Source: Monocercomonoides exilis PA203 (lineage: Eukaryota > Protista > Preaxostyla). From it: a stretch of DNA of 64,000 bases. This document shows positions 13,317 through 60,136 of the stretch, piece by piece. The stretch covers positions 1,116,001-1,180,000 of the forward strand of contig LSRY02000021.1 in the NCBI GenBank assembly GCA_001643675.2. The letters run 5' to 3'. Under the pieces are notes generated by a model that was not told where the DNA came from, did no database searches, and was given only the letters and a program-made list of their open reading frames with translations. How positions within the stretch are numbered: the stretch's first letter is position 1; each line of letters opens with the position of its first letter. Both the position numbers and the translations under genes were made by a program.

Positions 13317-13350
<34 letters not shown>

Positions 13351-21500: not shown

Positions 21501-22281
21501 ATGAATTGATAATGTATTTTTCTTTTAATGAGGTTAAAAGTTATAATTGGAAAAAAACAAAAATAATTCGAGTCAAAATCACAAATTTCATATAAGAATC
21601 ATTGAAGCATCAATATATTAGTAAAGCACACGATGTAACTTTGAAAAATACACTCAATACGGAAAATTATTGTATTTTATGGTTCTCTTGATCTTTTTTA
21701 TTTTTTTGAAAAAGCAAGCTCCTGAACAATTTTAAATATTACTTTAACAAATTATGTTCATTTAGGCAAATGGAGAAGATCCTGGTACCTCACGATCAAC
21801 GCCCTTAATTATAAAAATTCAATTATATTCGGAAAGAACAATCAATCTACGACACCTCTCTTTTATGGGAGTGAGAGCTCCTTATTAAGGGCTCTGTCGT
21901 TCACAAAAATAAAAATGGATGAAGTGAAATAATTTTAAAGTTAAAAGAAAATATATTGTGCAAAAACAAAGCGTACTGAAGTGTTGCAGAGTTTATAATG
22001 TGAATGATATGTTGTGCTTAATTTGAGGCTGTGTTAGTGTGGTGTCTGTTGCGATGGATTGTCACACTTGTGTGTGAACGTGTGAACCTGGTGTTGAAGA
22101 GGCTTTGGCTTCATGTTTGGCTTCGGCTAATGCTTTGATCCTGGTAATAGGCCATGTTCCATGCTCATTATTCTGCTAATGTGATTGTGTTGTCTTGCTT
22201 GTTCCACGACCGTTCCTCTATCTTTTAATACCTGCTCCTCCTTTATGTTGAGTGGTGGGAAGAGCTAAGCTCTGGGCTGGC

Positions 22282-22383
22282 AAGAGAGGTGTCGTAGATT
22301 GATTGTTCTTTCCGAATTAAAGTGCAAAGCACCTTAATTCTTAAGAACAATCGTGATCAACGACACCTCTCTTTTATGGGAGT
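22282..22383. repeat. DIRS internal complementary region (copy of the circle junction)
   Basis: AAGAGAGGTGTCGTAGATTGATTGTTCTTTCCGAAT is the reverse complement of the left end; AATTAAAGTGCAAAGCACCTTAATTCTTAAGAACAATCGTGATC... is the reverse complement of the right end; they are fused at GAAT. Confidence 0.92.
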
Positions 22384-22554
22384 CTTTAGTAATTGGGCTT
22401 TCCAGTTGTCTAGCTGAATTCTCCGTCTGGTACACTTGATCTTCCTTATGCTGATTATATCCCTTATCCCTTCAGCTTCGATGTTTGTCGTTCACTGATC
22501 GTCAGGTTCTTCTATCTTTGATGGGTGGGTTATCTGAGTGTCTTGTATTGAGGA

Positions 22555-25524
22555 CTAAATGACGGGAGGCAAACCGAATCTGATGATATCAGTTGGCAGG
22601 TTGGGTGTGACGCTTGAATCCGTATTCTCAAGCTGTTGGCTCTTCTCACACGAGGTTTGCTGTTGGAGTACCGGAGATTGTATGCTTGATGCTGAAATAA
22701 GCTTGTCGGCCATTTGATGGGATAGGTCTGCAGAGAGGTAGAATCTAGAGGGAGTGTGTGCAGTTGGTGATAGTCTAGCGTACTTTGCAACCAGAGTTTC
22801 CGGTACCTTGTTGAGCATCAGCGTTGAAATAGCAGCGTGCTTAATGGTGTATGGGCGGGAGTGTTTGGGGACTCCTATCTAAGACATTCCTATTCTAGCT
22901 AGCTTCCTAATACCATCCACTGTCAGCGGGGTGAATTTTATTGTGTTCAAGAGGAATGTGTCACACTCAGGGTGTCTCTGTTTTATGAATTCCCATAGGC
23001 ACAATAAGGTTCTTGCTGGGCAAATCTTTGCGTTTGGCTCGTCGAGGAAAGGTACTGTAATGCAGGAAGGTGAATTTGTCGTCTTGAGCTTCGTTTGGAG
23101 ATGCACTGCGCTTGAATCTATAATCGATGCCATCATTGAGAGCTGTGCTAGTTCACGAAACCTGCAGGCTGTGAATATCATAATTAGCAAAATGCTTTTT
23201 ATGGTGAGTTCAAGAAACGACAACTTCTCATTTGGGGAGTCTTGAAAATAATATCGAAAAGCGAGGTCTGGCTTCCACATCTCAGTATAAGGTTTTCTGT
23301 GCACTTGGCTTCTGGAAAACGACCTAAACAGCACATGAAAGAGAGAGTTTCCTCCTATCTCCTTTCCATAAACCACCTTTGAAAATAGTGAAATAGCCGA
23401 ACGCGTGGCTGCAAGACACGCATATGAAAAACCTCGTTCCCTCAGGTCTGTAAAACAGTCTGCGCAGTTCTTTATCCAGTTGTCAAACTTCTTGGGGAAC
23501 GGTCGCAGTTTCAATCTCCTCCATGCTCTGCTGAAGTGTTTGAATCCGAAGCAATACGATCTCCATGTTGTCTGATCCACACTGTTCTTTGCTGCACCTT
23601 GGATTCTCACCGGTACTCCGCATTGTCTCATGCTCTGTTTCCACCATATTTCGCCTTCGTCTGCTACCAGTTTAGCCGCGCCGCCATGTATCCCCCCGGT
23701 GGCAGAGATGCTCCAGTCCTTCTTAGCCCTTCTCCTGGTATCAGGACCTCCTTTGCGTCCTTCCACATAACTCGATGAGTCTCCATCTCTTCTAATATTT
23801 GACTCCACACTTGATTCTTCCAGGCTGGAAGAAAAAGAACCACTCTCGCTCTTTCCGTCTGGGCTTTTTTCAGACAAGGCATTATGAGAGGCACAGGGGG
23901 ATGTGCCAAGATGACTCCTTCTCTCCAGTCTGCGGCCAGACCGTCCGTGCACCAAGGGCTTCCTGGCCCATACCATATCGGTCTTTTCTTGTTTCTTATG
24001 TTTGCGAATGCGTCCACATTTGGGACGGCTTCCAGAACTGCTTCTGCTTCGCGAAGATTTTGAGTCCGAATCTCGTAGTCTCCTGCGATTGCGAGTCTTG
24101 ACAGCGAGTCTGCTATCACGTTCTTGTCTCCTGGAATATGAATTGCCTTAACTGTCAGATCCAATGCTTGACATACATATTGAATCTTTCTCAGTGGAGA
24201 AATCAAGTTCGGTCCTGCTCCCCACCTGTTGATGTTGAAAACTACTGAGGTATTGTACGAACCGAGGAGTAGGTTGTGGATTTTGTTGCGCTCCAGGTTG
24301 GAAGAAAAATTGTTGAGTACAAGGAGAACATCCAAGAGCTCTCTGTAATTCGATGTTTGTTCTCTGAATGTTGGGCTGAGAAGTTTGTGGAAATGTTGGA
24401 CATTCCCCGCAATATACAAGGTTGCTCCCACTGCAAAGGGAGATGCGTCCGTTGTAAGAACAGCTTCCGGGCTGGCAAAATCCACAAGCTTCCTGCTGAA
24501 CCTCGTATTCAGTCTCTGTAACCATAGCTCCAGTTGCTTCATCAGACTGCCGTTGAGACGCACCTCCCCATTCCAACCCGACTCTCTCACGCCTTTCTTG
24601 AGAACCGCATACCATCGGTTCATGAACAAGCTTGCATCTCTGAACACGAAGCGCGTAGCGCTGAGTAGCCCTATGAAGGATGCTAAACCCCGCACTTTCA
24701 CAGTCCTGCTGCGCTTCGCCCACTTCATCCATTTTCCACATTGTTGTCTCAGCTCCCTGCGTCGTTGATCCTCGAGTCTCACTGTCATCTGTTCGCTGTC
24801 CCATCTCCATCCAAGGTAATTGAAGTGTCCTTTTGGTTGTAGCTCGCTTTTCTCCATATTTACCAAGAAGCCTAACTGCCCCAACCAATCTACAATCTCC
24901 TTCGTTGCTGCTCTTAGATAATTCCTGTCCTGATGAAGAAGAAGAATATCGTCCAAATAAGTTACACATCTCACGCTCCACCGTTTCCTTACCTGTATCA
25001 TTTCTTTGCGCATCAACTTGGAAAAGACCCTGGGGGCGTCCTTGTATCCAAACGGCATTCCCCTGAAACCGAAGAAATCTCTTCTGAACTGGAAAGCCAG
25101 GTGAGGTGTGAACTCTCTGTGTACAGGTATGAGGAAATACGCCTGAGAAAGGTCCAAAGAAGTCGCCCAGTCTTCCTTTTGCAGCAGTTTCTCCACCGTG
25201 CGATGATCGTCCATTTTGAAGTGAACATCCTTCAGCGCGGAGTTCAGCGGTCTGCAGTCTGGGATTTGTCTGAATTTCCCGTTCTTCTTCGGGATAAAGA
25301 AAATATTGTTCAGGCAACCAACCTGGTCCGCGGTCAGCTTGGTCAACACTTCCGTCCTCAACCCCTCTTGTATCCACTCCGCACAAGCTTGTTCCTCTTT
25401 CTTCCCTCCGATAAAGCCTCTGCATCGTCCATTCTCCTTCTCTAGTTTTTCCCTCGCACCCTTTCCTTTCCAAATCGGTCGAATACCTTCCGCAATCACT
25501 TCTCCCGCTCCAATTTTCTCCCAC
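22555..25524 (-). pseudogene. DIRS ORF3: tyrosine recombinase with a long N-terminal extension overlapping RT; two nonsense codons
   Basis: ORFs 24148-25524, 22879-23976 and 22555-22818 share one frame, broken only by TAA at 24148 and TAG at 22879; YR motifs TACRFREL, ICPARTL, PYTIKHA, KYAR, RFY. Confidence 0.8.
23664..25499 (-). CDS. DIRS reverse transcriptase - RNase H - N6-adenine methyltransferase-like polyprotein
   Basis: FFIPKKNG, LDLSQAY, MPFG, YLDD; RNase H TTDAS/NYREL/ADSLSR with the third Asp replaced by Tyr (SYNTSVV); MT-like VDAFAN...HPPVPLI...LPAW. Confidence 0.9.
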   Translation of the reverse strand: MIAEGIRPIWKGKGAREKLEKENGRCRGFIGGKKEEQACAEWIQEGLRTEVLTKLTADQVGCLNNIFFIPKKNGKFRQIPDCRPLNSALKDVHFKMDDHRTVEKLLQKEDWATSLDLSQAYFLIPVHREFTPHLAFQFRRDFFGFRGMPFGYKDAPRVFSKLMRKEMIQVRKRWSVRCVTYLDDILLLHQDRNYLRAATKEIVDWLGQLGFLVNMEKSELQPKGHFNYLGWRWDSEQMTVRLEDQRRRELRQQCGKWMKWAKRSRTVKVRGLASFIGLLSATRFVFRDASLFMNRWYAVLKKGVRESGWNGEVRLNGSLMKQLELWLQRLNTRFSRKLVDFASPEAVLTTDASPFAVGATLYIAGNVQHFHKLLSPTFREQTSNYRELLDVLLVLNNFSSNLERNKIHNLLLGSYNTSVVFNINRWGAGPNLISPLRKIQYVCQALDLTVKAIHIPGDKNVIADSLSRLAIAGDYEIRTQNLREAEAVLEAVPNVDAFANIRNKKRPIWYGPGSPWCTDGLAADWREGVILAHPPVPLIMPCLKKAQTERARVVLFLPAWKNQVWSQILEEMETHRVMWKDAKEVLIPGEGLRRTGASLPPGGYMAARLNW

Positions 25525-26318
25525 TCTCGTGCGAAGGCTTGGGTGCGGCCTCCTTCTTTCTCTGAAAAAAACGGGTCTTTTGAGGGATAAAAGGTCTTTT
25601 GGAGTTAAAAGCTCTCGAGGAACGCGCGCTCTGCAGGCCAGCTGTATACGTTGAGTGTGTTAAGGTTTCTCGTTTCTTTTGCATCAATGGTGCAATCCTT
25701 TCAAGTTGTTCCCTGTTGAGTAATGGGTCTTCTTTTTCTTTCTGTAATAACCTAGCGGCAGCGAAACCAAATTTTGCAATTATCCTCATATGTCTAGCAT
25801 CTTGAAGCGCTGCAATTAAGAAGGTTAGCGCGTCGCTTAAATACGGTTTATCCTCCTGCTTCGCATTCTGAGTTGCCAGCACAATTGCCTTAAGCGCTGG
25901 AAGTAATCGGGACTCTACTTTCCAGGCTCCCTCGTCAAGTGCATCGGAAAACCAGCTTCTTGACCGGGAGTGAGCGTGGGTTCTAGCTGGAATAAACGGG
26001 GGGTTCCAAGAGTAACTCATATTCTGCTGCGGACTGATCAATATCACTGGCGTTAATTGGAAAGTTGAACACTGAGTTGGAGGTTTGATCCCCGAATAGT
26101 AACTTGCAGGCTTTATCCAAGTGTCATGTGGGAGCAGAGTCTGGCGTCATTGCAATGTCGTCGGCTAGTTGAGACACAGAAGATGAAGGAAATGCTAAAC
26201 CGGAAGCTGCGGAAGTTGGATTGGAGATGGGGATTTGTGCTCCCATACCGCCTGTTGGTCCGCTTTGCGGGAATATCCCGCTCAGTCCCGACGCAGATCC
26301 TTCCAACAATGTTGACAT
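25496..26318 (-). pseudogene. DIRS gag-like ORF1, frameshifted near 26130
   Basis: Lies between the 5' ITR and RT; ORFs 26124-26318 and 25496-26047 can be joined only by a frameshift. Confidence 0.55.
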
Positions 26319-27396
26319 TTATCAAATTTTGTGAACGACAGAGCCCTTAATAAGGAGCTCTCACTCCCTAAAAGAGAGGTGTCGTAGATCACGATTGTTC
26401 TTAAGAATTAAGGTGCTTTGCACTTTAATTCTCTAATTGTGCTTATTGGGTTTTAGGGTTTTGACGAATTAAACAAGTTCATTTTGTATATTGGGATGGT
26501 TTAGTGTTTTGTGGAGCAAAATTAGGGTAAGGATTAACCCTAGAAGAGACTTGGGGCAAAATTCTTTCATTTATGAAAAAAACAACAATTTGTTCCAAAC
26601 TTTTTCCACAACCTTATCATGAGAAATCTTGCATTCCTATGTCAAAAAAATACAGAAAAATTCTAAAGCTGAGAAAAATAATTGTTAGAGAAGAATGGAA
26701 CAAAATTCTTAAATCATAAAATTTTGTACCACTTTCAAAACGAAAATGATATGAATAGTGGGTAGGATCACCTTGGTACCAGGATCTACTCCACTTGCCG
26801 TTCATTTACTCATTTTAAACGATGGTTTATCGTTCAGCCATCAAATAAAAACCCATCTCCAATAATGATTGTTTTTGGACAAATGATTGTTTTGTTCTTT
26901 GTTGCACCATTCTAACAGAAACATAAAGTTAAGAATTAAGAATAGAAATTAATTGTATGTGCTTAATGATATTATAACTGACATTGAAAGAAAACGGAAT
27001 CACAATGAATTGACAGAATAACACAAAAATGATAGAAAAATTAAACAATTGCAAATTTGCTAAAACTTCAAAGGCAATAAGAAAAGATAATGAATATGTA
27101 AATGAATGTAAAAATACAGAAAATTCGAAGATATTTGACCGAAGTGTGATTCGAATTGAGGCAATTAGCGAAAGATCCAATGAATGAGAATGCTCTTCCG
27201 ATGATGGATGAAATAAATTTTAAAAAAGGGGGGGGAGATGAAAAGGCAGAAAAAGAGAAATGATTACAAAAGATGTACAATACACAAAAACTGAAAGAGA
27301 AAAAACAGTGAAAAGGAAAGATAGAATAAGAAAAAGACAGACAGAGAGATTGATAGACAAATAGATAGATGGAAAGAGATAATGAGAGATAGAAAG

Positions 27397-39132: not shown

Positions 39133-39338
39133 GGCTGATCCTTTTTGAAATCAAACTTTCGTTTGAGTTTTGATCAAAATTTATATCTCGATGGGATTTT
39201 GTTTAAAATGACTTGAAAAAGGGAACACTTGTTGTTTATGATATTGCTTTTGCAAAAACATATTTTGACGCAAATCCCATTGAGGTTTTAATTTTGATCA
39301 AAACTCAAACGAAAGTTTGATTTCAAAAAGGATCATCC
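39133..39338. mobile_element. Hairpin MITE (206 bp, about 75-bp TIRs) flanked by ATAT
   Basis: GG(C/A)TGATCCTTTTTGAAATCAAACTTTCGTTTGAGTTTTGATCAAAATT at both ends in inverted orientation; ATAT at 39129-39132 and 39339-39342. Confidence 0.8.
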
Positions 39339-40563
39339 ATATTTACATCAGTTGAAGCTCAATTTTACCCTTTTTTTTCATTAACTTATTATTAAACAGA
39401 AATAATCTATGAACTTTCGTGTTAAAAATACAGTTTGTTCAAAAAATCATTGCAAAAATAAACACTCCATTATATAATCAGAAGAAATAATCTGAATATA
39501 ATGAAAAAAAATACCAGATTAGCTGTTAATAAACCAATCAATATTTTTTTATTAGAAACTTTATCAAAAATGTTTTTGATCAAGGTTTTTATTATGTGAA
39601 CTACAAAAAAACTATTAATTCATTCTTCATGCAGTAATGGCAACATCTGACAACATAACTTTTTCATCCCCTTGAAAAAACAAACTTAAAAAATTAAAAA
39701 ATGAAATACTCTCCATCATTGAAAACAGAAGTTGGTTGCAATATTATTTCCAACAGAGTGTGAGAAAAAGATATTTGAGCAATGATTAGCAAAGAAGGTT
39801 GTGGAAAAAATTGGTCGACCCTCAATAATCAAAAGTTAACAACGCGAAAGAGTGGAAAACCACTCCGTTGCAGTTCTTTCCAAGCAAAAAATTGCAGAGA
39901 GAAGGACATTCAATCAATGGTTTAATAAGTTAATATTTTTTATTTATTTTTAATCACTTTTTTTACACACAAGATGTTTAAAAAACAAGTTGTTACAGAG
40001 ACGAAGAAAGGAATAAATATCTTTGGAAATTTGACTTTAATCTCAAAAAAAGAAGCTAAACATAAAAGGCATGCACTTCCAGAACGAAAAAAATAACAAA
40101 GATCCATGAAGAATCTCCAGAAACAATTCGTGAATGGTTCGAAAAGAAATCTTCCGCAATCACAGAAAATAGTGTAATTGCTACAAACATTCAAAACTTT
40201 GACAAATCCTTTGTTAGTATTTATAAGGGAATAGAAAAGCTCATTTTCTGCCACAAAACCCGATCACCACCTTCTCCTCCAACATTTCCAAAAAAAAAGA
40301 AAATACAACTTTATGTGTTTGTATTTGTGCGGACGAGTCTTATCTTCCGCATATGGGTAATTATTTTTGAAAACTTCCTTTTGTTTGTTTTTCTAATAAT
40401 ACAAAAATTTCATGTTTTCATCAATTTTTTGCTCCCACATTTTAAACTTCGCTTAAATGGAAACAGAACCTAAGCAATGTTTTTATTTCCATTAAAGTGA
40501 AGTTACGTGTGTTGGAACATAAGTTTTGTGAAAACATGAAATTTTAATTTATTTTTGAAAATT

Positions 40564-41062
40564 GGGTAATTCTTTTTGGAAAGTCACAAATGTTTAATTT
40601 GCAAATAAAACAAGAATTTCATATTTTGCTCAAATTTATGTAAACATGAGTGATTATTTTTGAACACATATTTTTTCCTTCAAAGATTTCGGTTCGAAAA
40701 TTTCTTTTAAATGTTTTCAAATGAACACTGAAAAGTGAACAAGCATATTTAAGACCTCTTTATTTTCATTTCGGATTATGCATTTGTTTTTGAAACAGTT
40801 GTGATTATTTAAGCACTTGGATGGAAAATTTCTTCCCAAATGAAAACAATCTTTAAAAAATCTACATCCCGAAAAAAGTTATGATTTCAAAAATAATCAC
40901 CCACATACACCAAACTTCACTAATAAGAAATCTATTTCTTGATAATGCTATTTCATTCATTCTGAAGAAATTTTGTGAGTGGAAACAGAAATTTGAACAA
41001 AATGTGAAATTATTGATTTATCTTAAAAATAAACATTTGCAACTTTTCAAAAAGAATTACCC
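40564..41062. mobile_element. Middle MITE (about 75-bp TIRs, AATT TSD)
   Basis: GGGTAATTCTTTTTG(G/A)AAAGT...AAATTT inverted repeats; AATT at 40560-40563 and 41063-41066. Confidence 0.8.
40648..40902. mobile_element. Inner 255-bp MITE (ACAT TSD)
   Basis: G(A/G)GTGATTATTTTTGAA TIRs; non-palindromic ACAT duplicated at 40644-40647 and 40903-40906; homologous to 50928-51182. Confidence 0.8.
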
Positions 41063-41324
41063 AATTAAACAAAAGGAAGTTAACAAAAAAAAAATCAGCC
41101 ACATAGTAATAAACGTTCTCTAAAAGATACCACAAGACTTTTCAATTTTATCCTCTTTTTGTATTTCTCGTTAAGCTTCCTTATCAAAATGGATAAATTT
41201 AGAGATATTTCGATATATCATTATTCCGTAATGGATTTCGTTGATTGCAAATAAACTGAAAGTGTGAGAATCAAAGAAAGAACTGTTTTTATTTAACAAT
41301 CACTGTTCACATTTTGATTCAGAT

Positions 41325-44100: not shown

Positions 44101-46873
44101 ATGGTGTTTTGGACTGTATACTTGTCGAAAAAAGGGTATTTTACATTTGCTATGACCAATTAATTTACTCACAAAAATTCTTTCAGACCTTTAGGAAAGA
44201 TTTGGCTTGCTGCGACATATGAAAAGAGTTTGAATAGATATGGAGTTTTACGTACAAATATCGCAGAAGCTGCTAAGATGATTGAAAGTGGAATACCTGT
44301 TGAAGCTGATGATAAAGATCATCTTCCTATTTCTGTGCGAATATCTGGATTTTTGTATTTTGGGCTTGTAAAAATATTCTCTCGAAAAGTTCGATATTTA
44401 TTTGATGATGTTAGAGGACTACAAACAAAAATAAACATGGTTAATACACATATTATTCTTTTAGTGCGTCACATTAATCATGATTGTTCAATTTATTTCT
44501 TTTTTTATTTCGAATGTTGTATACAGGCATTTCAATCGACCACTATTGATTTGCCATCAGATGTTACAGTGGCATCTCGGTCGCATATTACACTTCCAGA
44601 AACTAGTCTTGAGGATTTGATAAATATGACATTGACATATGATGCAGTTCCTTTAACAAGACAGATTCAATTTGGACCATCAACACAGTCAGCATTTTTT
44701 ACATCTCCATTTCAAGATTCGTCCAGTGCTTCTGGTCAATCAGTTATGAGAAGAAAGCCATCAAGAGAACAAGAAGAAACTTCTTTAATTTCAGGAATTA
44801 ATCAAGACAATAATGTGTGTAATTTGCTTAATAATTTTTACTATAATAAAATCAATTGTTGAATTTTACATCAAATGATATGATACAATTTATTTATTTT
44901 TTTGTAAGCTTCTACAAACACCATTTCTTGATCCGTCTTTGATGACAATGCTTGGATTTACCGATGCTGCAGGTACACCAACATCTCTTGCCACAACCGG
45001 AATGAACATCTTCACTGATAACTCGCCATTTGCAGAGCAAGCAGTTGATGGGACAATCGAGCGCAGGAGAACAAGTGGCAGAGCTGGACTAATAGCAGAT
45101 GCAGAGAGAGCATTGAAAAGGATGGAAGATTTGGATGGAGGTGAGCAAGACATGGCAATGTTTGCTGATTTTGAAATGGATGATGCTCAATCATCAAAGA
45201 AAAAGAGACGAATGATTTCTCAACTTGCGCACAGTGATTCCGCATTGGACAGATTTAAAATAGCCGAAGAAGATGAAGAAAGAAGAAATGAGCGAATGGA
45301 AGAGGAATTCGGAGAGCCAGGAACAGCATTATTTTCAGATGGAACGGAAAGCCAGATGACGCAAAACGTTGGAGGAGGTAAAGAAAAGCCAAGAAAAGAA
45401 AAATATTCAAATTTGAGAGACGATGAAATCATTATTCCTGACCAGATCTTTCGCGAGCATAATCAGAACACTGCACCAACAACACGTCATAAAGGAGAAG
45501 GGGCAGAAAACAAAACAGACAACATCAAAATGGATATTGAAAGCAGGACTTCAACTTTTGATGAAGAGACAACTTCAAAATCCGTGTTTGAAGAACCACT
45601 AGGCCTTCGTTTGAAGACCGATTCAATTTCAGATTTTCTGCCAAATTCATTTCTGAGGATAAAGCAACCAATTTATCCTGCATTTCCAAGAGAGGAAGTC
45701 GAGCCTGGTACGCAATTTTTTTGCTTATTTATCATTTAAAAAATTTTTTTATATTATCTTTTAAAATACTAAATGAACGTATTACTGATTCTGTTTGTTT
45801 TTTAGGGCAAATACGTTCTTTTCCTCCAACTCCATCAGCTGTGCCTGGAGCAGCAGATGGAACACATTATCGCAATGTTTTCAGCCATACAACAACACCT
45901 CAATCTGGCATGACAACACCAAGTATTAAGGGAGTTGCTGATGGTGATCAGCTTCAGGCAACCCCGTTTGACGTGCCTGGTAGTGCAGGTTTTGCATTAT
46001 CATCAGGATTTACTCGCAGAAGACAATTGATGAATGAAGATGTAGCAGCAAGCGAAGTCGGAGGAAGGCTCACAAAGGGAATATCAGATGAAGATGATGT
46101 TGACATGACTACATTCCAAACTTTCGACGATGCAGATTTTCCATTGCGCCAATCAGCGCTCGCTGGCAGAAGATTAACAGCATCAAGCAAACAAAGAGAA
46201 GAAGCGGATCAGTCAACTGCATTTGGCGGAATCAGAGGCTCTCATTTTGACAATGCTGTTGAACAGCAAAAGTCAATTGCAGAACGTGAAGATGGGATTC
46301 TATCGCCTCTGTTTGACATATTGTCGCCACCTCTTGAGAACCCTGCTGACAGGCCAAATCCATCGATGGGTTATACTCTTCCATTGACAGAACAGCAGCA
46401 TCAGAATCGTTTTGAAAGGCAGCCAGAACCATCTGTCCAGCAGTTCGACGAAAAGACTTTGGGATTAATGCATTTTATTAATGATAAGTTTGAAAAGAGA
46501 GAAGAAGAAAAGGAATCAGAAGAAGGAAAAGACGATAAAAAGAAAGGAAAGGAAAAGGAAATGAAAGCCAAAAGAGAAGGAAGTGATGATCCTCTTGATC
46601 CGTCAAATTCGATGAAGATGTCTGAGGTTATTGTTACACAGCGGAGACGGACTCTTGCGTATGCTTTTGCTGGCCTTCTGACACTGAACAGCACGGGCTA
46701 TATAAAAATGATGCAGAACTCGCCTTTGGGTGATATTAGCATTAACAGAACAGTTTGTAATTTTAATTTGTTTTTCGCTTTTTTGTTAAATTAAGAATTA
46801 TTGTAACTTTTCTTTAAAATTGTAGCCTCGCCTTCAACAATTTGCACAAGCTTCCAAAAGAAGAGTTAAATGA
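44101..46873 (+). CDS. Cohesin alpha-kleisin (Rad21/Rec8 family), multi-exon
   Basis: LSKKG|PLGKIWLAAT, TNI, ISVRISGFLYFGLVKIFSRKVRYLFDD; C-terminal winged helix RRTLAYAFAGLLTL...Q.SPLGDISI; TGA at 46871. Confidence 0.9.
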
Positions 46874-47582: not shown

Positions 47583-50369
47583 TCAAAGCACTAAACCAAT
47601 TGAAGAGAAATAGAAATATGCACGTGATTCTAAAAGAGAAGTATTTCCAGATGGAAGATGAGCCAAAAGGAGAAACAGATCGCTGATTCCATTCTCTTCA
47701 CACTCTTCGCGTATTATCCGTTGTGCACTAACTTCGTCAATGAAGAAAGGCGGATCATTCAACTGCTTGCTTTCAACCTCAGAAATAGATGACTTTTTTT
47801 GGCTTTCGTTGTTCATGGACATTATGTGTTTCTCCGGATAAATAGCACTGCAAATATTGAAAATGATATCGAAGCCATCGAGTGCTTGTGACTCGTTGAA
47901 TACTTCAGAAGCCATCTCAGCAGCATAATCAATAGCAACGTCTAACACTGAACGAGGATCATTCTTGCGAGATTCAATAGCACGTTTCATTTTGATGCTA
48001 TCAATTATAACATAATTCATTTCATACAGCATTTCTGCTTCAAAGCTCTCTGCTTCAGGATCCACTGTTTTTGACTCAGTCTCACATTTAATTTCATTTC
48101 CATGTAAAAATAACAACAAATTTGACGAATTAACCACAAAACCAACTTCGCGACTTAACAAATGAATCGCTGTCGCATTATGATTGTATCCAAAACACGC
48201 CAAAGTTGGCTCAAACTCTCCGCAGAAAATGCCTTCTTCCTCCACTTCCTTGATAGCTGTCTGAGATTTTGCCTTGCTTTTTCTTATGATTTCTGTTATT
48301 TTCTTTCGAAAGTGCATCTGCATCTGAGCAAGAGCCGTCAACCACATAATATTTCTTCCCTGCGGATCGTATTGCTTCTCATGTGTCTTATGCATCAGCA
48401 ATACATCAGTGATAAGCTTCATAACATAAACAATTATTTGTGTGCTCGATTGCTTTCGAAGAAAAGGCATCTGCTCATGAAATGTACTTCTTAAAGGACA
48501 ATATGAAACAGAAGCAGAAATAGCAGAAGAAGAAGCAGAAGAAGCAGAAGATGAAGTATCTTCAGTCGATATTTGAACAGATGCTGACGACGATGTTGTA
48601 CTTGAAGAGGCCACAAACGTGCTTTCATTTATTCTGGCCTCACAGTTCTCCAGCAATTTTAACATAAAAAGGCGGACGTCATAAATAATATTATTCACAT
48701 ACGAATAGAAAAAATTCTTCAGATTCGCAGCGACAGCCAAAGATTTTGGAGAAACAGAATCAGAAGTTTTATCAGAAGCAGCAATGCCATCAAACAGAAT
48801 TTGGCAAATCATTGTGAAATACACCAATGCAGCAGCCGCTGCCACGGTTGGGTGAATCGAATACGGTTGGTTTGTCAGAGGCGGAAGTGTTGAAGAAGAT
48901 GCCTCCGGTGGGCAAGAAGAAGAGTGCGGAAGAGAAAAAGATCGAGAAGAAGAAGAAGAAGAAGAAAAAGGCACTGTCGATGAACACAACATCCTATCTT
49001 TTGAACAACTGTTTTCACAAATTCTTCTTTCGGTCAGCCTCAAACGCTTCTGAAAGACCCGCTTTGCTGCCTCTTCGGAAAACACCTGCCTTGGAATAAA
49101 AAATTTTTCGCCACACGACTGAAACATCAGCACACACACAGCAACCTCAAAATCGCTCAATTCCCATCTTCAATCATAATCGGAACAAATGTCATGATGA
49201 TGGAAAGAGAACAACAAAGAGTGCGAGGAAGATTTAGTTCTTTGGGGCGGCTGTTCTGCATGTGGCTGTTGTTGTGATTTTTGTTTGGATTCTGAGGAAC
49301 CATCATCTTCAATCACAGCACACAAAAACGCCAACGCAAATGCATACGAGCAGACGTCTGCCACATTCTCAGAAATGCTAATTGTTATCACAACAGACGA
49401 CGAAAACAGCAGCTCTCTAAACACTGGCGGTAACGAACGAACAAATTGCTTCATGTGTGTCACTACGCTTTGAACTTCTTTTTCAGATGTCAATAATATA
49501 CTGTCAGGTGATTTCAATTTAGCTCTTAGTTCCTTTGGCAAGCCACTTTTCCTAAAAGTCTTTATAATGTTATATATCCACGAATAGACTCCACTTTCCG
49601 ACAAACATATAAAGAGCGGATTTAATGCAAAGTCATTCACGGTTCCATTTTCCATTTGCAACAAAAGTGCTGAGTTTTCCTCATTTCTCCTGTTATTAAC
49701 AGAATTTCCAAATGTTTCTGTAATATTATTAAGGACGGACATGACAACAGCTTGCATCATGAATCAAAGAACACCATTTATCTGTTGCAGGCTTCGAACA
49801 AATTTCGTTTGATTTTCATCCAATTCGTAATCGCTTGTCAACTTCTCTTTCTGAAATATTCTCTCTAAAAAACTCCGAAACTTTCCTCTAATTGCAACAT
49901 TTTCGCAATCTGTTTTTGAAATATTATTCAAAAAAGATTTCAAAAGATTACAAATATGATCAAACTTAAATGAATTAGATCGAAAGGACAACAGTTTATT
50001 ATGAAAAACTTTCCAAGGATCAAGCTTTAGAGAATCATAAACTACACTTTCCCTTTCTGAACTGAGATAAAATTTCGTATCGTAATTTTCAATTCTGATA
50101 AATGGATCGAAAACTCATTTCAAGCCTGATTCAATACTTCCTCCTTTTTTATCAGCAACTTTAAAAAAAAAGCGGTTAATGTTCAATTGCTGTTGAATAA
50201 GTGATTGAAAATTCTCATCACCAATTTCATTTGATCTATCTTTTTGAAGCAGAATATGAATGCAAAAATATTTCGGTACTTTTGCAATAATTTCACAAAA
50301 ATTCCAAGAATGTTTTCTGAATCGAAGAACAAGATGAATTACAGATTGGTCACAAATTCCATAATCGAC
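47583..50369 (-). pseudogene. 3' part of a transposon-disrupted ubiquitin-like-domain gene
   Basis: A single frame from 50361 to 47583 begins (D)YGICDQSVIHLVLRF (end of a ubiquitin fold) and is broken only by TGA at 50115, 49764 and 49170. Confidence 0.85.
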
Positions 50370-50551
50370 GGTGAGTCACAACTTTAAATAACATTCAGAA
50401 ACTCGTTTTTTTTTCGGATTTTTTCTAATAGAATGATTTAATATCAAAAAATAAAACATGCTAGGGGTGAATTTTCCATTTTTAGAACACTTTTTTTTTC
50501 TATGAAAAAAATCAAATTTTCGAAAATATTATGGTTATGATCAAACGAATT
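50370..50551 (+). repeat. Left TIR of the 9.5-kb element
   Basis: GGTGAGTCACAACTTTAAATAACATTCAGAAACTCG...ATGGTTATGATCAAACGAATT. Confidence 0.95.
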
Positions 50552-50927
50552 TCAAAAATTATTGTTTGAAAATTGAACGATTTTTGGAAATTTCATTATT
50601 TGGTACAAATTTATTTGTTTGTAAATATATTTCGATTCAAATGAAGTGAATTAAAGATGTTTGAAGTTTTTATTTGATTGTATTGAAAGTTTTAAAGGAA
50701 AAAAATTTTGTGAAAACGAACTTCTCGGGTTTCGTTCTGCTTTAGTGTTTTCCTTCGAATCGAAATATTAGGTTTTGGGTTTGCGTTTAATTTTTGCTTA
50801 TTTTTTTCATAAATATGGTTAGGGTTTTAATCGAAAAATCAATTTTTCACACACAAAAAACGTGTGTTTCAATGATTGCGCAAGATGAAAGGTGAAAATA
50901 ATAAATATTAAAATGAATTGAGAACTT

Positions 50928-51182
50928 GGGTGATAATTTTTGAAATCATATTTTTTTTCGGGGTGTTGATTTTACAAAGATTGTTAGTTTTTTGAAAGAA
51001 AATCTCAATTCAAAAGAGAAAAAACATGATAATTATTTTTTAAAACAAATGGTTTTTCAGAATCAAATATTAAAATGCATTCAATAAGCATTTTCACTTT
51101 TCAATTTTTTTATTGATATTCAAGTTATATTTTTGCACCGAAATTTTTGAATGAAAATATATAATTTCAAAAATAATCACCC
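50928..51182. mobile_element. 255-bp MITE (ACTT TSD) nested in the 9.5-kb element
   Basis: GGGTGATAATTTTTGAAAT / ATTTCAAAAATAATCACCC TIRs; ACTT at 50924-50927 and 51183-51186; same length as, and inverted homolog of, 40648-40902. Confidence 0.85.
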
Positions 51183-51743
51183 ACTTTTATTATTTTTTCT
51201 ATATGGCAAAATTTTTTTGAAAAGTTCCTCGACTTTAATTTTGTCCCACAAAAGATCATAAATGATCAAAAAATGTTGATCATTCCGTTCCCATTATTGT
51301 TTTATTGATTTTATAAATTGTTATTTTCTGAGCTTATTACTGAAAAATATTTCAAAAATCTGATGATAACATACAGAACGTTAATAATATAATACAATAC
51401 GCTTTTGTTAGCAACTGCTATCGAGCTATTTGAATCAAATGAATTGCATGCTCTTATTTCTGCATTTTCATTTCATCTATTCGAATATTCATTATAAATA
51501 TATGAATGTTATCCAAGTTTTTATTATTTTCTTTTGCTGAAAGATAAAAAAAATTGATTTACTTGAATTCTTGAATTTTTTTAATAAATTTTTTAAACAG
51601 GAAAGATTTATCAAAACAATACTCGTTGCGTTAGAATAATATTCAAAAAGGAGGTGACATAAAGCAATTATTAATATATTTTTGGAAAATTGGAATGATA
51701 CATTTTTTTTCTAAATAAATCTCCATTTGTAACAAACTCAAAA

Positions 51744-54700
51744 ATGTTATCTCTTCAAATATTAATATTTAAACAGTTTGTATCAAACAAGTTTCTTTCA
51801 TCTCAGAATGTGCCTTTTCCTTCTCCCTTTCAGTTTAAACAGATGCATTATAAAAAGATGTTTTGCCTTAATCTTTTCAAATTGTACGGAGTTAACAGGC
51901 TTTTTCGGCTGTTCGTCCATTTTGATACAAATGTGGATGCTGTTAGCTCTTCGGGTGGTTCTTCTGGCTGACATGATGAGAAATATCTCATCAAACTTCT
52001 TGTGGCCTTGGCAGTGAAGCAGTCATCTCTTCGTTCAACACCATTGCCTTCTTCGTCTTCAACAGGAGCAGCATGCCGATCAACTTCGCCATTCTGGAGG
52101 ACGAGAAGAGAAGAGAAGAAGGAAATGGGGGAGTAGAAGCAATCTTCAGTATTTTCTTCAGCTCCTGAAATTTTCCCTTCAGATGCGTCAGCTGTGGTAG
52201 TTCCATATATATCAGCAGCAGCGATGGACCACATCGAAAGGTGGCTGGGGAGTATGTTAATCAAAAGATATCGTTTCTGAGGGAGCAACACACGCTGCGA
52301 AGATATGTTGTTGCTCGGAAGGGGGTGCTGTATGGGGGTGTTGTGCATTCCTCCGATACTGCGATATCGGCGATGTTTTCGGTTCCGCTGGTGGCTCCGC
52401 TTCCGTTGCTTGCAGTGTAAGTTGGCACGAAGTCGGGGAGCAAGCGGATCTTTGAAGCGCCAGGCGTGAATGCGTTCCAGTCGATCTACGATCTGTTTTA
52501 CCTGTCGCTGCAGATATGGAGATCACAACAGTCGAGGCGTGTGGAGGTGAAGCTGGACGAGGAAGTGATGGGGCGAGGGGTTGCTGTGTGTGAAGTGGGG
52601 GAGATTGTGGAGAAGAGAATGGAGGCGGTTTGGTTGAGGATGGAGGATGTGGTTCTGTTGTCTGAGGAGATTGTGCTGGCGGTGCTGGAGGAGCGGGAAG
52701 AGGCAGAGGAAGCAAAAGAAAAAGAAAAAAAGAAGGAAAAGAAGTTGGCTGTGGAGAAGAAGATGAATAAAAAGGAAATACATGAAAAGGTGAAGCAGGA
52801 GATAAAGAAGAAGTATTCTGCAGGGAAGGATAAGATCATATCGATGCAGGAGAGGAAGATTCTGCAGCTGAATTAGAAGTCTAACTCAGAAGTAAGGAGG
52901 TGAAGGAGGCGAAGGAGGCGAAGGGACAGTTGGTGGCCACGAAGGAGAAGGCGGGGCTGATTGGTGTAAGGATTGAGAAGGAGAAGAAAGGCTGTTCTCT
53001 TCAAAGCGAAGTGGTGAGTATGGATTGCAAGTGAAAACTGGCTGGTCAGGGGTTACAATTGATACATCTCCTTCATTAATTTGTGCGTATGGCGGGTGGT
53101 TCCATCTTTGGCTTTGTTGATACTGCCGTTGGGGCTGCATGAAAAGTGAAGGGAGAAGTGAACAGAGATCAACAAAAATGGAAGTGTTGTGATGCTTGGA
53201 CCAGATCTGAATGGGAAGGGGGTTGTTGCAAAAGTGGGGAGTGAGGCGAGTGTTGCGAGAAAAATAAACAGCAGTGATGGAGGAGGTGGTGGTGGAAGTG
53301 GGGGAACGAGATCTGTAATCAGCAAGAGATTGGAGAAGAAAGGCGTTGGTGCAAATGGAAGTGGGTGTGGAAGAGCAGATGCAACGGTGCAGCAGAAGAT
53401 GAACAAGATGGAGAAGGAAACGAAGATGCTGATTGAGCTGTCGAAAGTGCAGTAGCAGACGTTAAGCGAGCAGAAGGCGCTGTTCAAGGAGGTGATTGAG
53501 AAGCGGCACACAGCGCTTGCGCAAAAGAAGCAGGAATAGAAGAAAATGAAGGAGTCGTATGAAGAGACAGTGCCGCGCCTGGTTGGGTAGGTGAATGAGC
53601 TGGAGAAGCAGGTTGGGCTTGGGGACTTTGGAAGTGGCAATAAATGCGGGGCAGAGGAGAAAAATGAGAAGAAGAAGGATGTGGCGAGGAGGAGGAAGAA
53701 CAAAAGTTGAGTTGGAAAATACGATGAAGCTGAGGAAGGTGAAAATGGAGAAGAAATAGATGAGAGTGCGCCGTATGGGTTTCCTCTATCGCAGTGAGAA
53801 GATCTAACGAAAGAGTGAAAGGACTGGATGCTAGCTGTTGATCCAAATTGTGAAGAAAAAGGAGTGGGGAAGGCGATAATTGTGCAGCGGCTGTACATGC
53901 TTCTTGAGCAGACAACAGACAACAGAGACCGAGAAGAGTCGGAGCGATCTGCTGCGTATTTTGGTGGATTTGGGGCAGGGTTGTCTGTGGCAGGCAGGGT
54001 GCCTTTGCCAAATGGGAAGACAGAGATGAAGCGACTGATGAGCACGATGTCAGGTGTGCTGGGGCAAGTGGCGTACGAAATGGTTTATGTACTTCGGATG
54101 TCGTACATATATTAGTCGTCTATTCCGATTCAGCGGAGTCAGCAGTAGCTAAAGACAGGACTGCGATAGAAGCTGGCGTGGACGCTGTCAACGATCCAGA
54201 GAATATATGGAGAAGATATTAGCAGATTTGAGCGATGGCAGCGCTGGGTGGGAAGATGGGGTGCTTCCAAGTCAGTTGTTTTGGGGATTTTTTGTGTATG
54301 CGGCTGTGGGAGAAGTGCTCGGAGAAATAGAAGAAGGAGGTGGTGCTGTTGAAGATGATCTTCGTGGTGGAACTGTTCCGAAAAAAATTTGCGGAGGTGC
54401 GGCTGTTGGGTGGTATGTGCCGGAGGAGTTTCCTGGATGCGAGCTGTATGACTTCCTGCACTGCAACACGGTGCTGTTTGAAGGTGAGCAGCAGCAGTTG
54501 CCGATGAAAGAGAAAGAGGACTTCTTGACTATATCGTTACGGATGTGTCGGATGTGTATCAATATTGTGCTTGAAGGGGAATTGGGGAAGAAGATAAAGT
54601 TGTTTCTTGGGGAGTAGGAAGAGATTAAGTCGGATAAGGGGGAGGCAGAAGCGTATGTGTTTCTTGGATTGTAGCTGAACTTCTGAGGAAGAAGCTGCGA

Positions 54701-55350
54701 GGTTGAAAGAGGCGATGAATGCGCAGTCAGATGCGATATGCAGTGAAGATCCACTGATTTCATCATCTTCAGCAACATCATCGTCAATGTGTGTGGCTTG
54801 TTGAGGCAATGCGAACGATGAAGTGGAGTCTCTTCTGCATGTACAATCCGCAGACGCTATTAGCGCTGTCCCTGAGGATCTTCTAAGACACGTGCCGGAT
54901 GTTTTGATGCTGTCTGCCATATTAAGTGTCGGTGCTGTGGGAATATGAGGAAAACGACTTTATCAAGCTGTACCAGCGGCAGCCGGACGTGTGCGATGCT
55001 GCTGACCGACGAGAGCCTCTATCATAGTCTGAGAACGTTGCGGTTGTAAAGACTGTAAGCTGTCACTTGGCACTGCGGAAGCAAACACCTGACGAATAGA
55101 TGAGGGTACTTTCGTTGGTGTCGGCTGGGATGTGGGTAAGGGTTGTGCTGAGGTGGAGTGTGGAGAGTGTGCAGCCTGCGGTGGGGAAGAAAGAAGGGCG
55201 GCGGGCGCTGTTGTGGATGGTGCGGCTGGTTGTGGAGCTAGGGGAGCTACAGTTGTGTAGAACGAGGTGGAAAGGGCGATCCGCTTTAAGCTGCCACTGG
55301 AGGATGGGCAGCAAGTGATGCAGTTTCACAAGGAGGTGGCACAACAGAGG
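51744..55350 (+). pseudogene. Decayed large coiled-coil/helical protein gene (cargo)
   Basis: GC-rich coding-like segment; frames continue through many TAG/TGA codons and several frameshifts; boundaries approximate. Confidence 0.65.
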
Positions 55351-56867
55351 GAGGGAGGAGGAGTCTAAATCTTGTCATGCATCATATGTATATGCTTTTT
55401 CAACACAGCACAAATAGATTTCGAGAGAGATGGTGATGGCTTTTAATAACATGTTGCTGTCATTTGAGGCTGCATTTGGCTTGATCGATCCTTAGATTTC
55501 TCCGACGATATTTTCATCGGCAATATTATAATCATCAAATAAGTCTTTTTATTATTATTTCCTTTTCTTCTATCTCTTTAATTCTAATTATCTCTATTTT
55601 CTTTTGAAATGCACTTTCTTTTTCTTCGACACTTGCTTCCGCTCTGTCCATTACCCTCTTTCATCTTCCATTTTTTGTTTATTATTGCCTTCGTTTTCTT
55701 TTAATGTACTTGTCGAGCGAAACAAACATTTTATTAATCTTAGAATACGTTGTCTTCTTTTGACAGATTTCAAATAAAATGTGAGAAATACAGAAGAAGA
55801 AGAATCTCTTGACGAAGAAGCAGCAAACTTCGTAGATGAAGGGATAGACAAAAAAACGGATTTTGCAGAAGAAGCCTCATAATGTGCTTAAAGCGTGTTT
55901 GACGAGAGTCTGATAATCGTCTTGTATATTTTCCCTCAGGTTGTTCCCTCTGTGGAGTGCGCTTCTGAAAGTTTATCGAAATGTTCGTCTTCTCTTTTAT
56001 TTTTATTCTGCAATTTTTTTTTGTGAGGTCTTCTTTATATGTAAGATGTTTAGATGGTTTATCTTCAATGACTTCAGAAGAGTGAGTTAACAAAATCACG
56101 TTAAGTGAGATTGAATGATATTTTCTTCAGTGTCTACACTGAACACAGCTGATGTTGTGCGCATTGCAGCTTGCAAGATGGCTTTTCCAGCTTTTGTTAA
56201 AGCTTGAGACCATGCTCAAGTTAGTTATCATTTTTTCATTCTTCATCTTCCACTCCATCCATGTCATCGCCTCTATCCTCCTCGCCAACTTCGCACACCT
56301 CTTTTTATTGTTCCACTTTCGAAAAGTGTGCGCATGTCTCCTTCAGTAATAATTGAGGAGCTAGTAGTGCAGGGAAGCCAGCAGTAGTTGGAGTGAGAAC
56401 GACAAGCCCGATGCAGTGCCTGAAAGTGAATTGCTTGTGGTTGCGATGTGGAGTGAATGAGATATAAAAGCATGCTGAGCAGCTACTTCAACATCACTCA
56501 CTCCATTGCTTTCTGCTTCTCGATTGCTTCGACTTTATGCTTCAGATTGGTAGATGCACATAAAAATGCTCCGAATAAAGACTGAATGCGAGCTGGTTGC
56601 AGAGAAATTCGAGGATTATTTTCTCTTCACTAACTTCTGTCATTTCTATATGGTGTTTGACATCTTTTAATTATGACTTTGTGCCTGGATTTTGCTTGAT
56701 CTTCTGTACAATTTCATCTTCTGTATTCATTTTTTCTTTTTCTTCTTCATTCTCATCTTTTCCAGTTTGAATGTTGCACTCTCCGAAAAAGATAAAGTTG
56801 TTGGCAGGATGTCGCTTTCTTTGTTTGACATTGATGATGTAAAAGAAGAACTGAAAGAGTTGATGGA

Positions 56868-57003
56868 GAAGAGAGAAAGAGAGAGAAAGAGAGAGAAAGA
56901 GAGAGAAAGAGAGAGAAAGAGAGAGAAAGAGAAAGAGAAATAGAAATAGAAATAGAAAGAGAAAGAGAAATAGAGAAATAGAGAAATAGAGAGAGAGAGA
57001 AGA
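56868..57003. repeat. (GA)/(GAGAAA)/(TAGAAA) microsatellite
   Basis: Directly visible. Confidence 0.85.
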
Positions 57004-57169
57004 TGAAGGGAAAAGAAAAGGGCAGATTCTGGATGGAAACGATGCATTTGAGGTTTTTGAGACTGATTTGCGAGAGTGGGAATTGGATCTGACTGAATTA
57101 TCTGGTGATGATGACTATAATCGTTGTCCGCGTGATACAGAGTGCTTTCCAAAAATGAACAATTCTACC

Positions 57170-59138
57170 AAATTGAATCTTCGAAATATCTTTTCTTTCC
57201 TTCTCGTCTTTTGATGACTCATATTCATACAAACGGTTTGAAGCTACTCTTCTGAAAACATCGCTCAGAGTTAATTTTTCTTCTTCTTCTTTTTCTTATT
57301 TCTGTTTTTCCACTTAACATTTTGGAATCTTGTGTGAATCTATCCCCAGGATGTATTCAGTCGAACAACTTTCAGCCAAAAAATACTCTGATGATTCTGA
57401 ATGTCCCAAGCTTTCTCAAATATTCTCTCTTTATCCTCTTTCATTCTTTTTTTCTCCCTCCCTCTCTGCTCTCCTCCACTGCTCTTCTGAAGAAGGCTCC
57501 ATCGTCACCATTTCAAATGCCTTCGGATCCTTTTTCACCGTGTCATTCACAATCTCTTCCAATTCTTCTGTCCATCTCTTTTGTTTTCTCCATCGAACAA
57601 TGAATATCACTGCGACAATTAAAATAATCAAAAGAACAAAGGCCATAACAATCACAATTATAAACCATATCGATTTTCCTTCTTTTCCTCCTTGTACAAG
57701 TTTCCCATCTCCATTTGTTTTCACCTCTCTTGTGTTCTTCAGAATGAAAGGCTCTGTGGCCGAGGGAGCATCAGCATTTCTAAAGAGCAGACACGCATAC
57801 GCCTTTGCCTCCGCTAACGCCTCTCGAAAAATGCTCTCTCGCATTATCTCAAAGGACTCTTTTTCCTAGACAATCCCTTTCGCATCGAACTCCAACAGAT
57901 TCAGCAAAACCTCTGTTTCGATGGTTGTTTACAGCCGGAACGACAGATTGCAGTACAAAAGGAGCTCCACCTGGAATCCGATTGTGACCTTTCTCTGTTT
58001 ATCTACTTCATTCCCAACCTCGTCAATAGAATGGAGTGTTGGGATGAAGAGGGGAGATTGTCTCTGGCGGGGGATGCAGGCAAGGGTGTATTTGCTGTCC
58101 AGCATCCACAGAGAGGTGTTGTCTTTCGCATTGTCTTCCTCTTTCAAACTCTCTTCGATCAGCGACGCCCCATCGGAGTAGGCGATGTTCCTGCGGGCTG
58201 ACGGATAGCTGCTGACCGAAAGGCTGCTACGGGTAGAGGGGCCGTTGCCCACAAACTTTGCATAGTCGATGCGGACAGCACCTCCAGAGATAGACAACGC
58301 TCATCTGATGCGTTTGCCACGGTGAGATCGCTGATAGCTGCTATTGTGTTGTACAAATGAAAGAGGAGATGCTGTCTCAGCTGTCTCCGTTTATATTGCA
58401 GAGCATTCTATGTGAGCTTTCTCAATAAATCACGCGATAAGCGAGAGTTAGGGTGCATTCCTTACACTCACATAACTTCCTTGAAATGTCTGTTCATCAA
58501 TTTCGTTGCTAGAGGATAAGGGACATTGCGAGCAGATGCAATTGTTCGGGGAAATATACTCAGATGGAGAAGACACAAAAAGTACAGACGAGCCTAAGGA
58601 TGCGCTGGCACCTGTGTTTGTTCAGTTGGGAAAGATGAACCGGAAAAGGCAAAATATTCTTCGGCTGTAAAGGGGAGGCAGAGGATTCCTCCCTGCGAAA
58701 ACACCAGATGCTCTATTCCTACGCTGTGCTCCAAGGAGCTCCCGCACCGGCGAAACTCGAAGACGCTGACTGACATCTGGATGTGCTGAAAGTTTATTTC
58801 TGCGAAGGAGATGCGGTCGACAGTAGAGAGAAAAAAACGCGGGAGAGCGAACGCGAGGCGTTTGACGTAGCTGTTATCGACAATCAAGTGGCCATTCTCG
58901 ATGGCTAGCAAAGATTAGTCGAGGAATGCTGGATGTTCAGCTTGCTCTGTGGTTGACAAAATGGTAGAGGAAGCAAAATGAACAAAGAAGAGAAAAATGT
59001 GGCCATCGGTGTGGCACACAACAGCACTGCCCGTGTGCGAAAAAGATGGGTCGAAGAGGAAGTCGAGACGCCCAATCCTGACATTTGCAGACGTCGCAAA
59101 GATAACAGGGCAGCGCTGAATGGAGGCTTCGTTTGCAT
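57170..59138 (-). pseudogene. Fragmented surface/transmembrane protein gene (beta-helix-like ectodomain + TM + cytoplasmic tail; cargo)
   Basis: Frameshifted pieces: GGAVRIDYAKFVGN...RRNIAYS, EPFILKN, TM WFIIVIVMAFVLLIILIVAVIFIVRW, then EELEEIVNDTVKKDPKAFEMVTME. Confidence 0.65.
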
Positions 59139-59736
59139 TATTGGGAATATTGCAACAAAATAGTTAATTTAAATAAATCCAAAATTTTATTAACATAAAA
59201 GAACAAACAAATCACAAACCATCAATTTTGTAAATAATTTTGTTTATTTGGACTTGAACAAGTTGTATTAGCTTCTATGAAACATTGATGTTCATTATGA
59301 GCAATGAAAAATTCCCATTTTAACAATACAAGAATTCTTATAATCGATAAAACATTCTCAAAAAACAATCGAAACATACTATGAAAATTTCATGAATCAA
59401 CAATTGCAAAACAGTTTAATCAAGAAAAACCCTTTTTCATTGAATAACAAAAATATTAATTTTGATCAAATAATTGGATATATTATTTTTTGATCCTTTA
59501 TGTATTATCTTGTTGAGAAGTTTGTATGAACCAACAAACATAACTTTGAAAGATTGATATTTTCATTGATATTATGGAAACGGAATAAAAATTAATTAAC
59601 TGACATGGGTCGATTTTTTGATCTGATGTCACTTTTCAAAAAAATTTAGCCATATAAAATAAAAAAGAAAGCTTAGAATTATATAAATTTTTAAAATAAT
59701 TCTTTATTTAAGTTGGTTTCATTTTTAGTAATCAGT

Positions 59737-59918
59737 AATTTGTTTGATCATAACCATAATATTTTCGAAAATTTGATTTTTTTCATAGAAAAAAAAAGTG
59801 TTCTAAAAATGGAAAATTCACCCCTAGCATGTTTTATTTTTTGATATTAAATCATTCTATTAGAAAAAATCCGAAAAAAAAACGAGTTTCTGAATGTTAT
59901 TTAAAGTTGTGATTAACC
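59737..59918 (-). repeat. Right TIR of the 9.5-kb element
   Basis: Reverse complement of the left TIR, including matching 9-base homopolymer lengths. Confidence 0.95.
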
Positions 59919-60136
59919 TAATCGATTAATTTCCTTCTGTTTTCTAACGATTTTCCACAAAATATGGAGCGTATATCATCAGCTGGGATCCCTTCAGTTC
60001 TTTCAATCAAAACTTTCAAATCCCAAACGCTGAAGTGTGTATCCACACTGCAAGAAATCTTTTTACCAGATAATAGCAAACAGTGAACAGTAAAAGGCTT
60101 ATGATCCCTAGACAAAACAGAAAAATGACTTGACAT
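59919..60136 (-). pseudogene. 5' part of the disrupted ubiquitin-like-domain gene
   Basis: MSS...LLSGKKISCSVD...VWDLKVLIERTEGIPADDIRSIFCGKSLENRRKLID is a ubiquitin fold truncated at the insertion site. Confidence 0.88.

Follow-up and report, generated by a model that had tools for sequence, protein, structure and literature searches.

In a 64,000-nucleotide stretch of the genome of the protist Monocercomonoides exilis PA203 (GenBank assembly GCA_001643675.2, contig LSRY02000021.1, positions 1,116,001 to 1,180,000; hereafter the window), a ubiquitin-like (UBL) fusion gene is split by about 9.5 kb of mobile DNA. This insert is best explained, with a probability of about 85%, by three successive nested insertions: an outer miniature inverted-repeat transposable element (MITE) of the Merlin group, termed element A, followed by two putatively Sola-like elements, B and C, of which C carries the fragments of host genes. 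The original prediction had treated the whole as a single 9.5-kb Pack element. That description gives way to three nested insertions, as element C has its own ends, its own target duplication and copies elsewhere that are free of A.

Genome-wide counts refer to the M. exilis assembly of 82.3 Mb in 101 contigs (contig labels G000:C1 and so on); a Nanopore assembly of this species has been published (PMC8767320). Comparison at the level of letters covers 60 extracted loci, and the remaining genomic copies are placed by coordinates. The genetic code is standard. An alternative code in which TAA and TAG specify glutamine is ruled out, as CAA and CAG are used in long genes and the stops of the split gene are TGA, facing sense codons in its paralogue.

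The interrupted gene provides a precise record of the event. Removal of 50362-59918 rejoins a minus-strand frame running from 60136 to 47583, with 998 codons ahead of the final stop, and the 5' piece matches the ubiquitin domain PF00240. The two gene pieces were searched separately for domains and homologues, and the joined frame served for codon counting only. A single paralogue exists in the genome, on contig C8; it has a 996-residue open frame with 82% amino-acid identity over the last 528 residues, and the 5' piece maps to G000:C8:1424080-1424401. The distance from the junction to 49169 is 1,193 bp both on contig C8 and in the window with the insert removed, so that the insertion added exactly the element and one 8-bp copy. 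The same match rules out a 7-bp duplication with one extra base. The paralogue therefore displays the empty site to the base, which bears out the earlier claim that a real DNA-transposon insertion split a ubiquitin-like gene. The accompanying claim of a 998-codon fusion gene does not hold, because three of these codons are in-frame TGA stops. All three are covered by contigs from a 2016 DNA run with 0 differing letters and are thus not Nanopore errors; introns over them are unneeded, given that the paralogue is one frame of equal length.

The window copy is a pseudogene, while the paralogue on contig C8 is intact. Two compared stretches contain 35 differences, 27 residue-changing and 8 not, which gives a ratio of nonsynonymous to synonymous differences per site (pN/pS) of 0.83 from a small sample. 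This near-neutral ratio, at a divergence of about 7-8%, indicates that the window copy was dead during most of its divergence. Where long contigs from an RNA run cover the gene, they carry the paralogue's type of sequence, and one of these contigs departs from the window at 50369 with 187 letters remaining, as expected of an empty junction. No homologue of the C-terminal part of the protein was found outside this genome. Public annotation P0001 (window 47586-49460) places a 563-residue gene in the pseudogene remnant, apparently by means of an intron over the TGA at 49172.

Element A forms the outermost layer. Its 182-nt inverted repeats are 98% alike (3 mismatches, at positions 4, 6 and 178), end in GG...CC and are flanked by an 8-bp target duplication (Table 1), much as first described. 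Genome-wide, 42 matches to the repeat were counted, and most pairs enclose 829-840 bp. Once B and C are subtracted, A in the window measures 839 bp and aligns end to end with this family of about 840 bp, a non-coding MITE without cargo. Its identity to 9 of 11 aligned copies is 84-92%, and to the other two 81% and 74%. Paired copies number at least 17; the 8-bp duplication is perfect in 6/17, matches at seven of eight letters in 2/17 and is missing from 9/17, among which a search for swapped flanks gave no convincing cross-match. In none of the 17 does the duplication reach 9 bp. GG...CC is present at both ends in the window and in 15/17 paired copies. A Merlin-type transposase sequence from the supplement of PMC8101967 sits between A-like repeats, and a 30-base pattern from it maps to G000:C11:757570, between A-type ends at 756681 and 758268; matches to PF12762 (DDE_Tnp_IS1595) number at least 150 in the genome. 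Because of its GG ends, its 8-bp duplications and the transposase inside A-type repeats on contig C11, element A is a Merlin (IS1595-family) MITE. The earlier assignment to Mutator or Merlin thus survives in its Merlin half. Membership of the 9.5-kb unit in Mutator or Pack-MULE is not supported, since the duplication falls short of 9-11 bp and the cargo does not lie directly between the long repeats.

Two features of the A family affect how its arms are to be read. In 9/17 copies the arms cluster by copy with strong support, and private changes are common to both arms, so the 98% arm identity provides no date for the insertion. The practical lesson is that near-perfect long repeats here neither date an insertion nor prove that the interior moved along. 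Other A copies also carry Sola-like inserts, at the equivalent ATAT site on contig C69 (from junction letters) and on contig C8 (from coordinates). Within the family, the two arms of a copy are homogenised. The interior can face either way with respect to two end variants, and several copies form fold-backs (contigs C68, C36 and C32). Inward-facing A-type ends also occur 32.6 kb apart at G000:C35:424-33004 and 23 kb apart at G000:C69:2014021-2037237, which could be large nested or compound units.

Element C makes up 8,447 of the 9,185 bases interior to the 182-bp repeats, and the lengths of the nested parts add up exactly (839 + 255 + 4 + 8,447 + 4 = 9,549 bp). Full-length copies of C exist on contig C1 (8,418 bp) and contig C23 (8,324 bp), each flanked by ATAT on both sides, set in unrelated flanks and devoid of A sequence, so that ATAT/ATAT is found in 3/3 complete copies; the copy on contig C23 adjoins a receptor-kinase gene. 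Further long matches lie on contigs C91, C2, C1, C52, C11 and C36, and C occurs without A at about eight other loci. The loaded C has been amplified by transposition, as the copies on contigs C1 and C23, with their own ATAT duplications and different flanks, demonstrate. Single C ends are found at AAAT, ATTT, AATT, ACAT and ATAT targets, and the end motif occurs 653 times in the genome (320 + 333), against 0 + 1 for the control. C-type ends bound both MITEs of about 240 bp and elements of about 4.7-8.5 kb. The terminal inverted repeats of B and C are short and begin with G. No recognisable transposase was found inside C, in line with the original prediction for the interior. DUF7869, which we take to be a mark of Sola transposases, has six genome matches in frames of 437-887 residues, none near the listed C ends. 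No clear bias resembling repeat-induced point mutation or CpG mutation was seen in C (C>T 27/2,171; CpG 2.3% vs 0.9-1.3%).

The MITE that had been predicted within the 9.5-kb unit is present and corresponds to element B, other copies of which have ATAT, ATGT, AAAT and ACAT duplications. At G000:C12:1432737-1433006, a B-type MITE adjoins a left end of C, with an AAAT target common to both. Further Sola-like MITEs lie in the window at 39133-39338, 40564-41062 and 40648-40902, with ATAT, AATT and ACAT duplications and one of them nested in another.

Table 1. Coordinates of the split gene, the three nested elements and the cargo in the window
Feature	Positions	Strand	Basis
3' piece of the ubiquitin-like gene, now a pseudogene	47583-50361	-	in-frame TGA stops at 50117, 49766, 49172
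8-bp target duplication of A, left copy (TAATCGAC)	50362-50369		junction letters
Element A, left part, including left 182-bp repeat 50370-50551	50370-50927		alignment to A family
Element B, 255-bp MITE, GGGTGAT ends, 4-bp duplication ACTT (50924-50927 / 51183-51186)	50928-51182		ends and duplication
Element A, middle piece (18 bp) separating B from C; its last four bases are C's left ATAT (51201-51204)	51187-51204		alignment to A family
Element C, 8,447 bp, Pack-type, putatively Sola-like; inverted repeats of about 21 bp, ATAT duplication (right copy 59652-59655)	51205-59651		ends, duplication, sibling copies
Cargo 1, decayed remnant of part of an IQCH-like (ATP-grasp) gene	52268-52700	+	PF24923 match in sibling copies (E 2.5e-11)
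Cargo 2, part (about residues 273-1236) of a lineage-specific family, decayed and frameshifted	52772-55504	+	intact 1,391-residue member near a contig end
Middle segment, no assigned identity	55505-57300		only in C copies among loci compared
Cargo 3, decayed piece (residues 499-1122) of a giant transmembrane receptor-kinase family	57320-59130	-	homology to intact members
Element A, right part, including right 182-bp repeat 59737-59918	59656-59918		alignment to A family
8-bp target duplication of A, right copy (TAATCGAT)	59919-59926		length fixed by paralogue
5' piece of the ubiquitin-like fusion gene, with its start codon and the greater part of the UBL domain	59919-60136	-	PF00240 (Pfam), E 9.7e-07; 89% DNA identity to contig C8

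The cargo of element C derives from at least three host gene families and occupies both strands, which agrees with, and extends, the earlier report of pieces of at least two unrelated host genes on opposite strands, one from a surface-protein family. Element C is of Pack type: it has inverted repeats and a target duplication, lacks a transposase and holds fragments of several host genes. The earlier idea of a gene-capturing, non-autonomous element is therefore retained, with the cargo now assigned to the nested C and not to the outer 182-bp repeats. Cargo 1 lies within a 1.5-kb left arm common to many C copies. Among annotated M. exilis proteins, 106 short ones match the IQCH-like piece, and 78 of these match C, a count of similarity and not of location in C copies; part of the gene catalogue may accordingly be transposon cargo. 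For cargo 2, neither a Pfam match nor a homologue outside this genome was found, and the middle segment likewise has no homologue outside it. Cargo 3, which belongs to the receptor kinases, takes in the membrane segment and not the kinase domain; intact members of that family exceed 1,450 residues on contig C20. All cargo pieces are interrupted by stops and frameshifts, and homology to intact relatives ends abruptly at 59126 and 55504. Intact family members of cargo 2 and cargo 3 do exist, with 71-84% DNA identity to the pieces in C; no direct parent was found among them.

Copies of C are mosaics. The window copy is 99% identical to a copy on contig C12 over the first ~750 bp and 93% over 1.5 kb, and its body is mostly 93-99% identical to the copies on contigs C1 and C23. 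Its last 200 bp are 95% identical to a copy on contig C11, as against 76% to those two siblings. The kinase cargo contains sharp tracts of 120-300 bp that differ by 20-30% between otherwise near-identical C copies, and divergence in cargo 3 is patchy at about 57509-57672 and 57941-58062. The second of these tracts is specific to the window and is 84% identical to host kinase genes, compared with 73-76% to sibling C copies; no donor of it was found, the host kinase genes being the best match. This pattern probably stems from gene conversion or template switching.

Several explanations compete with three nested insertions. According to one of them, a single 9.5-kb Pack-Merlin or Pack-MULE captured host pieces between its 182-bp repeats and was inserted whole or, in a weaker form, the nesting arose at another locus, from which the loaded unit later moved to this one. 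The two arms are indeed intact and 98% identical, and large intervals between A-type ends exist on contigs C8 (7.2 kb) and C69 (7.3 kb). However, the interval on contig C69 contains a nested Sola-like element by its junction letters, and that on contig C8 contains C-type ends by its coordinates. The cargo lies entirely inside element C, with its own ends, duplication and A-free copies; no second unit of A and C with this content was found, arms that group by copy keep no time, and the decay of the target gene exceeds the divergence of C from its siblings. Capture of the cargo by A is largely refuted, and the single-unit account as a whole is very improbable. About as improbable is the notion that the interior of C consists of decayed genes native to a large mobile element, whose intact relatives are themselves element genes. 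It would fit the lack of outside homologues for cargo 2, the presence of the IQCH-like piece in about 100 short gene models and a full-length IQCH parent that was not reached. Against it, IQCH is a conserved eukaryotic protein domain, homology to intact relatives breaks off at the two positions given above, and cargo 3, truncated at either end, is an internal part of a member of the largest gene family annotated in this cell (PMC6759080), whose intact members on contig C20 exceed 1,450 residues.

The classification of element C leaves more room for doubt. It is unlikely, yet deserving of serious consideration, that, with the nesting as described, C is a member of some other superfamily that makes 4-bp duplications, or that its ends are TG...CA, with a 2-bp duplication inside an A..T target. 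The string A-NN-T G...C A-NN-T can formally be read both ways, no transposase is tied to C, and ACAT and ACTT deviate from strict AWWT. Nevertheless, a reading as Ginger, with TG ends and a 4-bp duplication, does not hold for the copy of C on contig C23 or for a copy of B, and the ends of C have a TTTTGAAA(A)GT core in common with the repeats of insect Sola1 MITEs (PMC3845634), a point of resemblance only. An assembly artefact that joined repeats can be all but dismissed. The region is rich in repeats and the outer junction is unbridged among the contigs listed, but the three nested target duplications are in correct register, collinearity with the paralogue on contig C8 is exact, private changes are common to both A arms, and independent runs yielded window-specific contigs.

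Some observations weigh against three nested insertions as set out here. No transposase is linked to the ends of C or B, and for this reason their Sola-like affiliation is inferred from ends and duplication. No near-identical parent was found for any of the cargo pieces, the best host matches being 71-84%. A target duplication is absent from 9/17 paired A copies. The transposase on contig C11 was assigned by eye from the supplement, and that copy appears decayed. Finally, no contig bridging the 50369/50370 junction was found among those listed, so this join rests on the long-read assembly and the paralogue arithmetic.

In the proposed sequence of events, a non-autonomous Merlin MITE of about 839 bp, A, would have entered a duplicate ubiquitin-like fusion gene by means of a transposase supplied in trans, producing the 8-bp duplication. 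The split gene copy would then have decayed while the paralogue on contig C8 remained intact. Two Sola-like elements with 4-bp A..T targets, the 255-bp B and the 8.4-kb C, would subsequently have entered the AT-rich, dispensable interior of A, and C, as one unit, would have spread to several other loci. Among copies of C, and between these and host paralogues, arms and short tracts may since have been traded; both the capture and the patching of cargo could be due to template switching or gene conversion. The placement of A before C is suggested by divergence, because the body of C differs by 1-7% from its siblings, whereas A is at most 92% identical to its own and the dead gene differs by 7-8% from its paralogue. 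With its Merlin ends intact, the 9.5-kb unit might in principle move; no second copy of the whole was seen among the matches. As in nested transposon insertions generally, with no difference in principle, an older, neutral element has gathered younger ones, each of which made a duplication of its own.

GG ends and 8-9-bp duplications are the defining marks of Merlin elements, of which M. exilis carries more than 100 copies; these fall into at least seven families, described as F1-F7 (Lopes et al. 2021, PMC8101967). Element A resembles them in its GG termini, its 8-bp duplications and the one transposase copy within A-type repeats. It differs from F1-F7 in being non-coding and in its 182-bp repeats, the published repeats being mostly 23-29 bp, and its ends match 0/7 published family starts (PMC8101967). 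A 4-bp AWWT duplication marks Sola1 (PMC3845634) and Sola2 (PMC3627910), and amoebal Sola2 elements carry a Fanzor passenger gene with swapped 3' halves (PMC3627910). B and C are similar to both groups in their 4-bp AT-rich duplications (ATAT, AAAT, ATTT), short G-starting inverted repeats and MITE derivatives. In contrast to both, C contains decayed pieces of several host genes and no transposase, and no autonomous partner was identified.

Capture of gene fragments by cut-and-paste transposons occurs at scale in plants and is rare in animals. Element C is like the known Pack-TYPE or Pack-TIR elements (Pack-MULE, Pack-CACTA, Pack-hAT, Pack-PIF and Pack-Mariner; PMC8903248, PMC8277862) in being non-autonomous and multi-copy, with terminal inverted repeats (TIRs), a target duplication and multi-gene cargo. 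Those surveys, which concern plants and animals, treat MULE, CACTA, hAT, PIF and Mariner, with Sola and Merlin unmentioned. At 8,447 bp and in a protist, C is also larger than the rice Pack-MULEs of Jiang 2004, which are mostly 1-2 kb with none above 7 kb (PMC6431247). In a literature search of incomplete coverage, no description of Pack-type Sola elements, or of such capture in a protist, was found. Neither the outer element nor the inactivated paralogue is out of the ordinary; the novelty lies in a Pack-type, Sola-like element in a protist, inside an ordinary Merlin MITE.

The window holds other mobile and cellular sequences. A head-to-tail dimer of a 1,449-bp Merlin element occupies 8186-11088, its units 100% identical and its target a T-run; its transposase matches PF12762 (E 6e-16), with stops upstream. 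Nested insertions recur at 40351-41066 and at 21765-26799. The latter element has GGCAA inverted repeats of 25 bp, is flanked by the 9-bp duplication GTTCATTTA and encloses TTAA-flanked inverted-repeat elements together with a reverse-transcriptase element that is DIRS-like in appearance. A Rad21/Rec8-type cohesin gene with an intron lies at 44230-46794. At 11784-16733, a 1,649-residue ATG4-like peptidase C54 is encoded; a very long insert, rich in serine, apparently interrupts its catalytic domain.

Unclassified repeats make up 35% of the M. exilis assembly and overlap its largest gene family, that of the receptor kinases (PMC8767320). Element C is a candidate cause, concrete and testable, for part of this. 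A broader proposal, which is speculative and improbable, is that the Sola-like Pack family, with its hundreds of ends, is a main source of unclassified repeats and fragmentary gene models, and that its receptor-kinase cargo continually swaps short tracts with live surface-receptor genes. If this were true, mobile pseudogene copies would form a silent archive that feeds surface-receptor variation.

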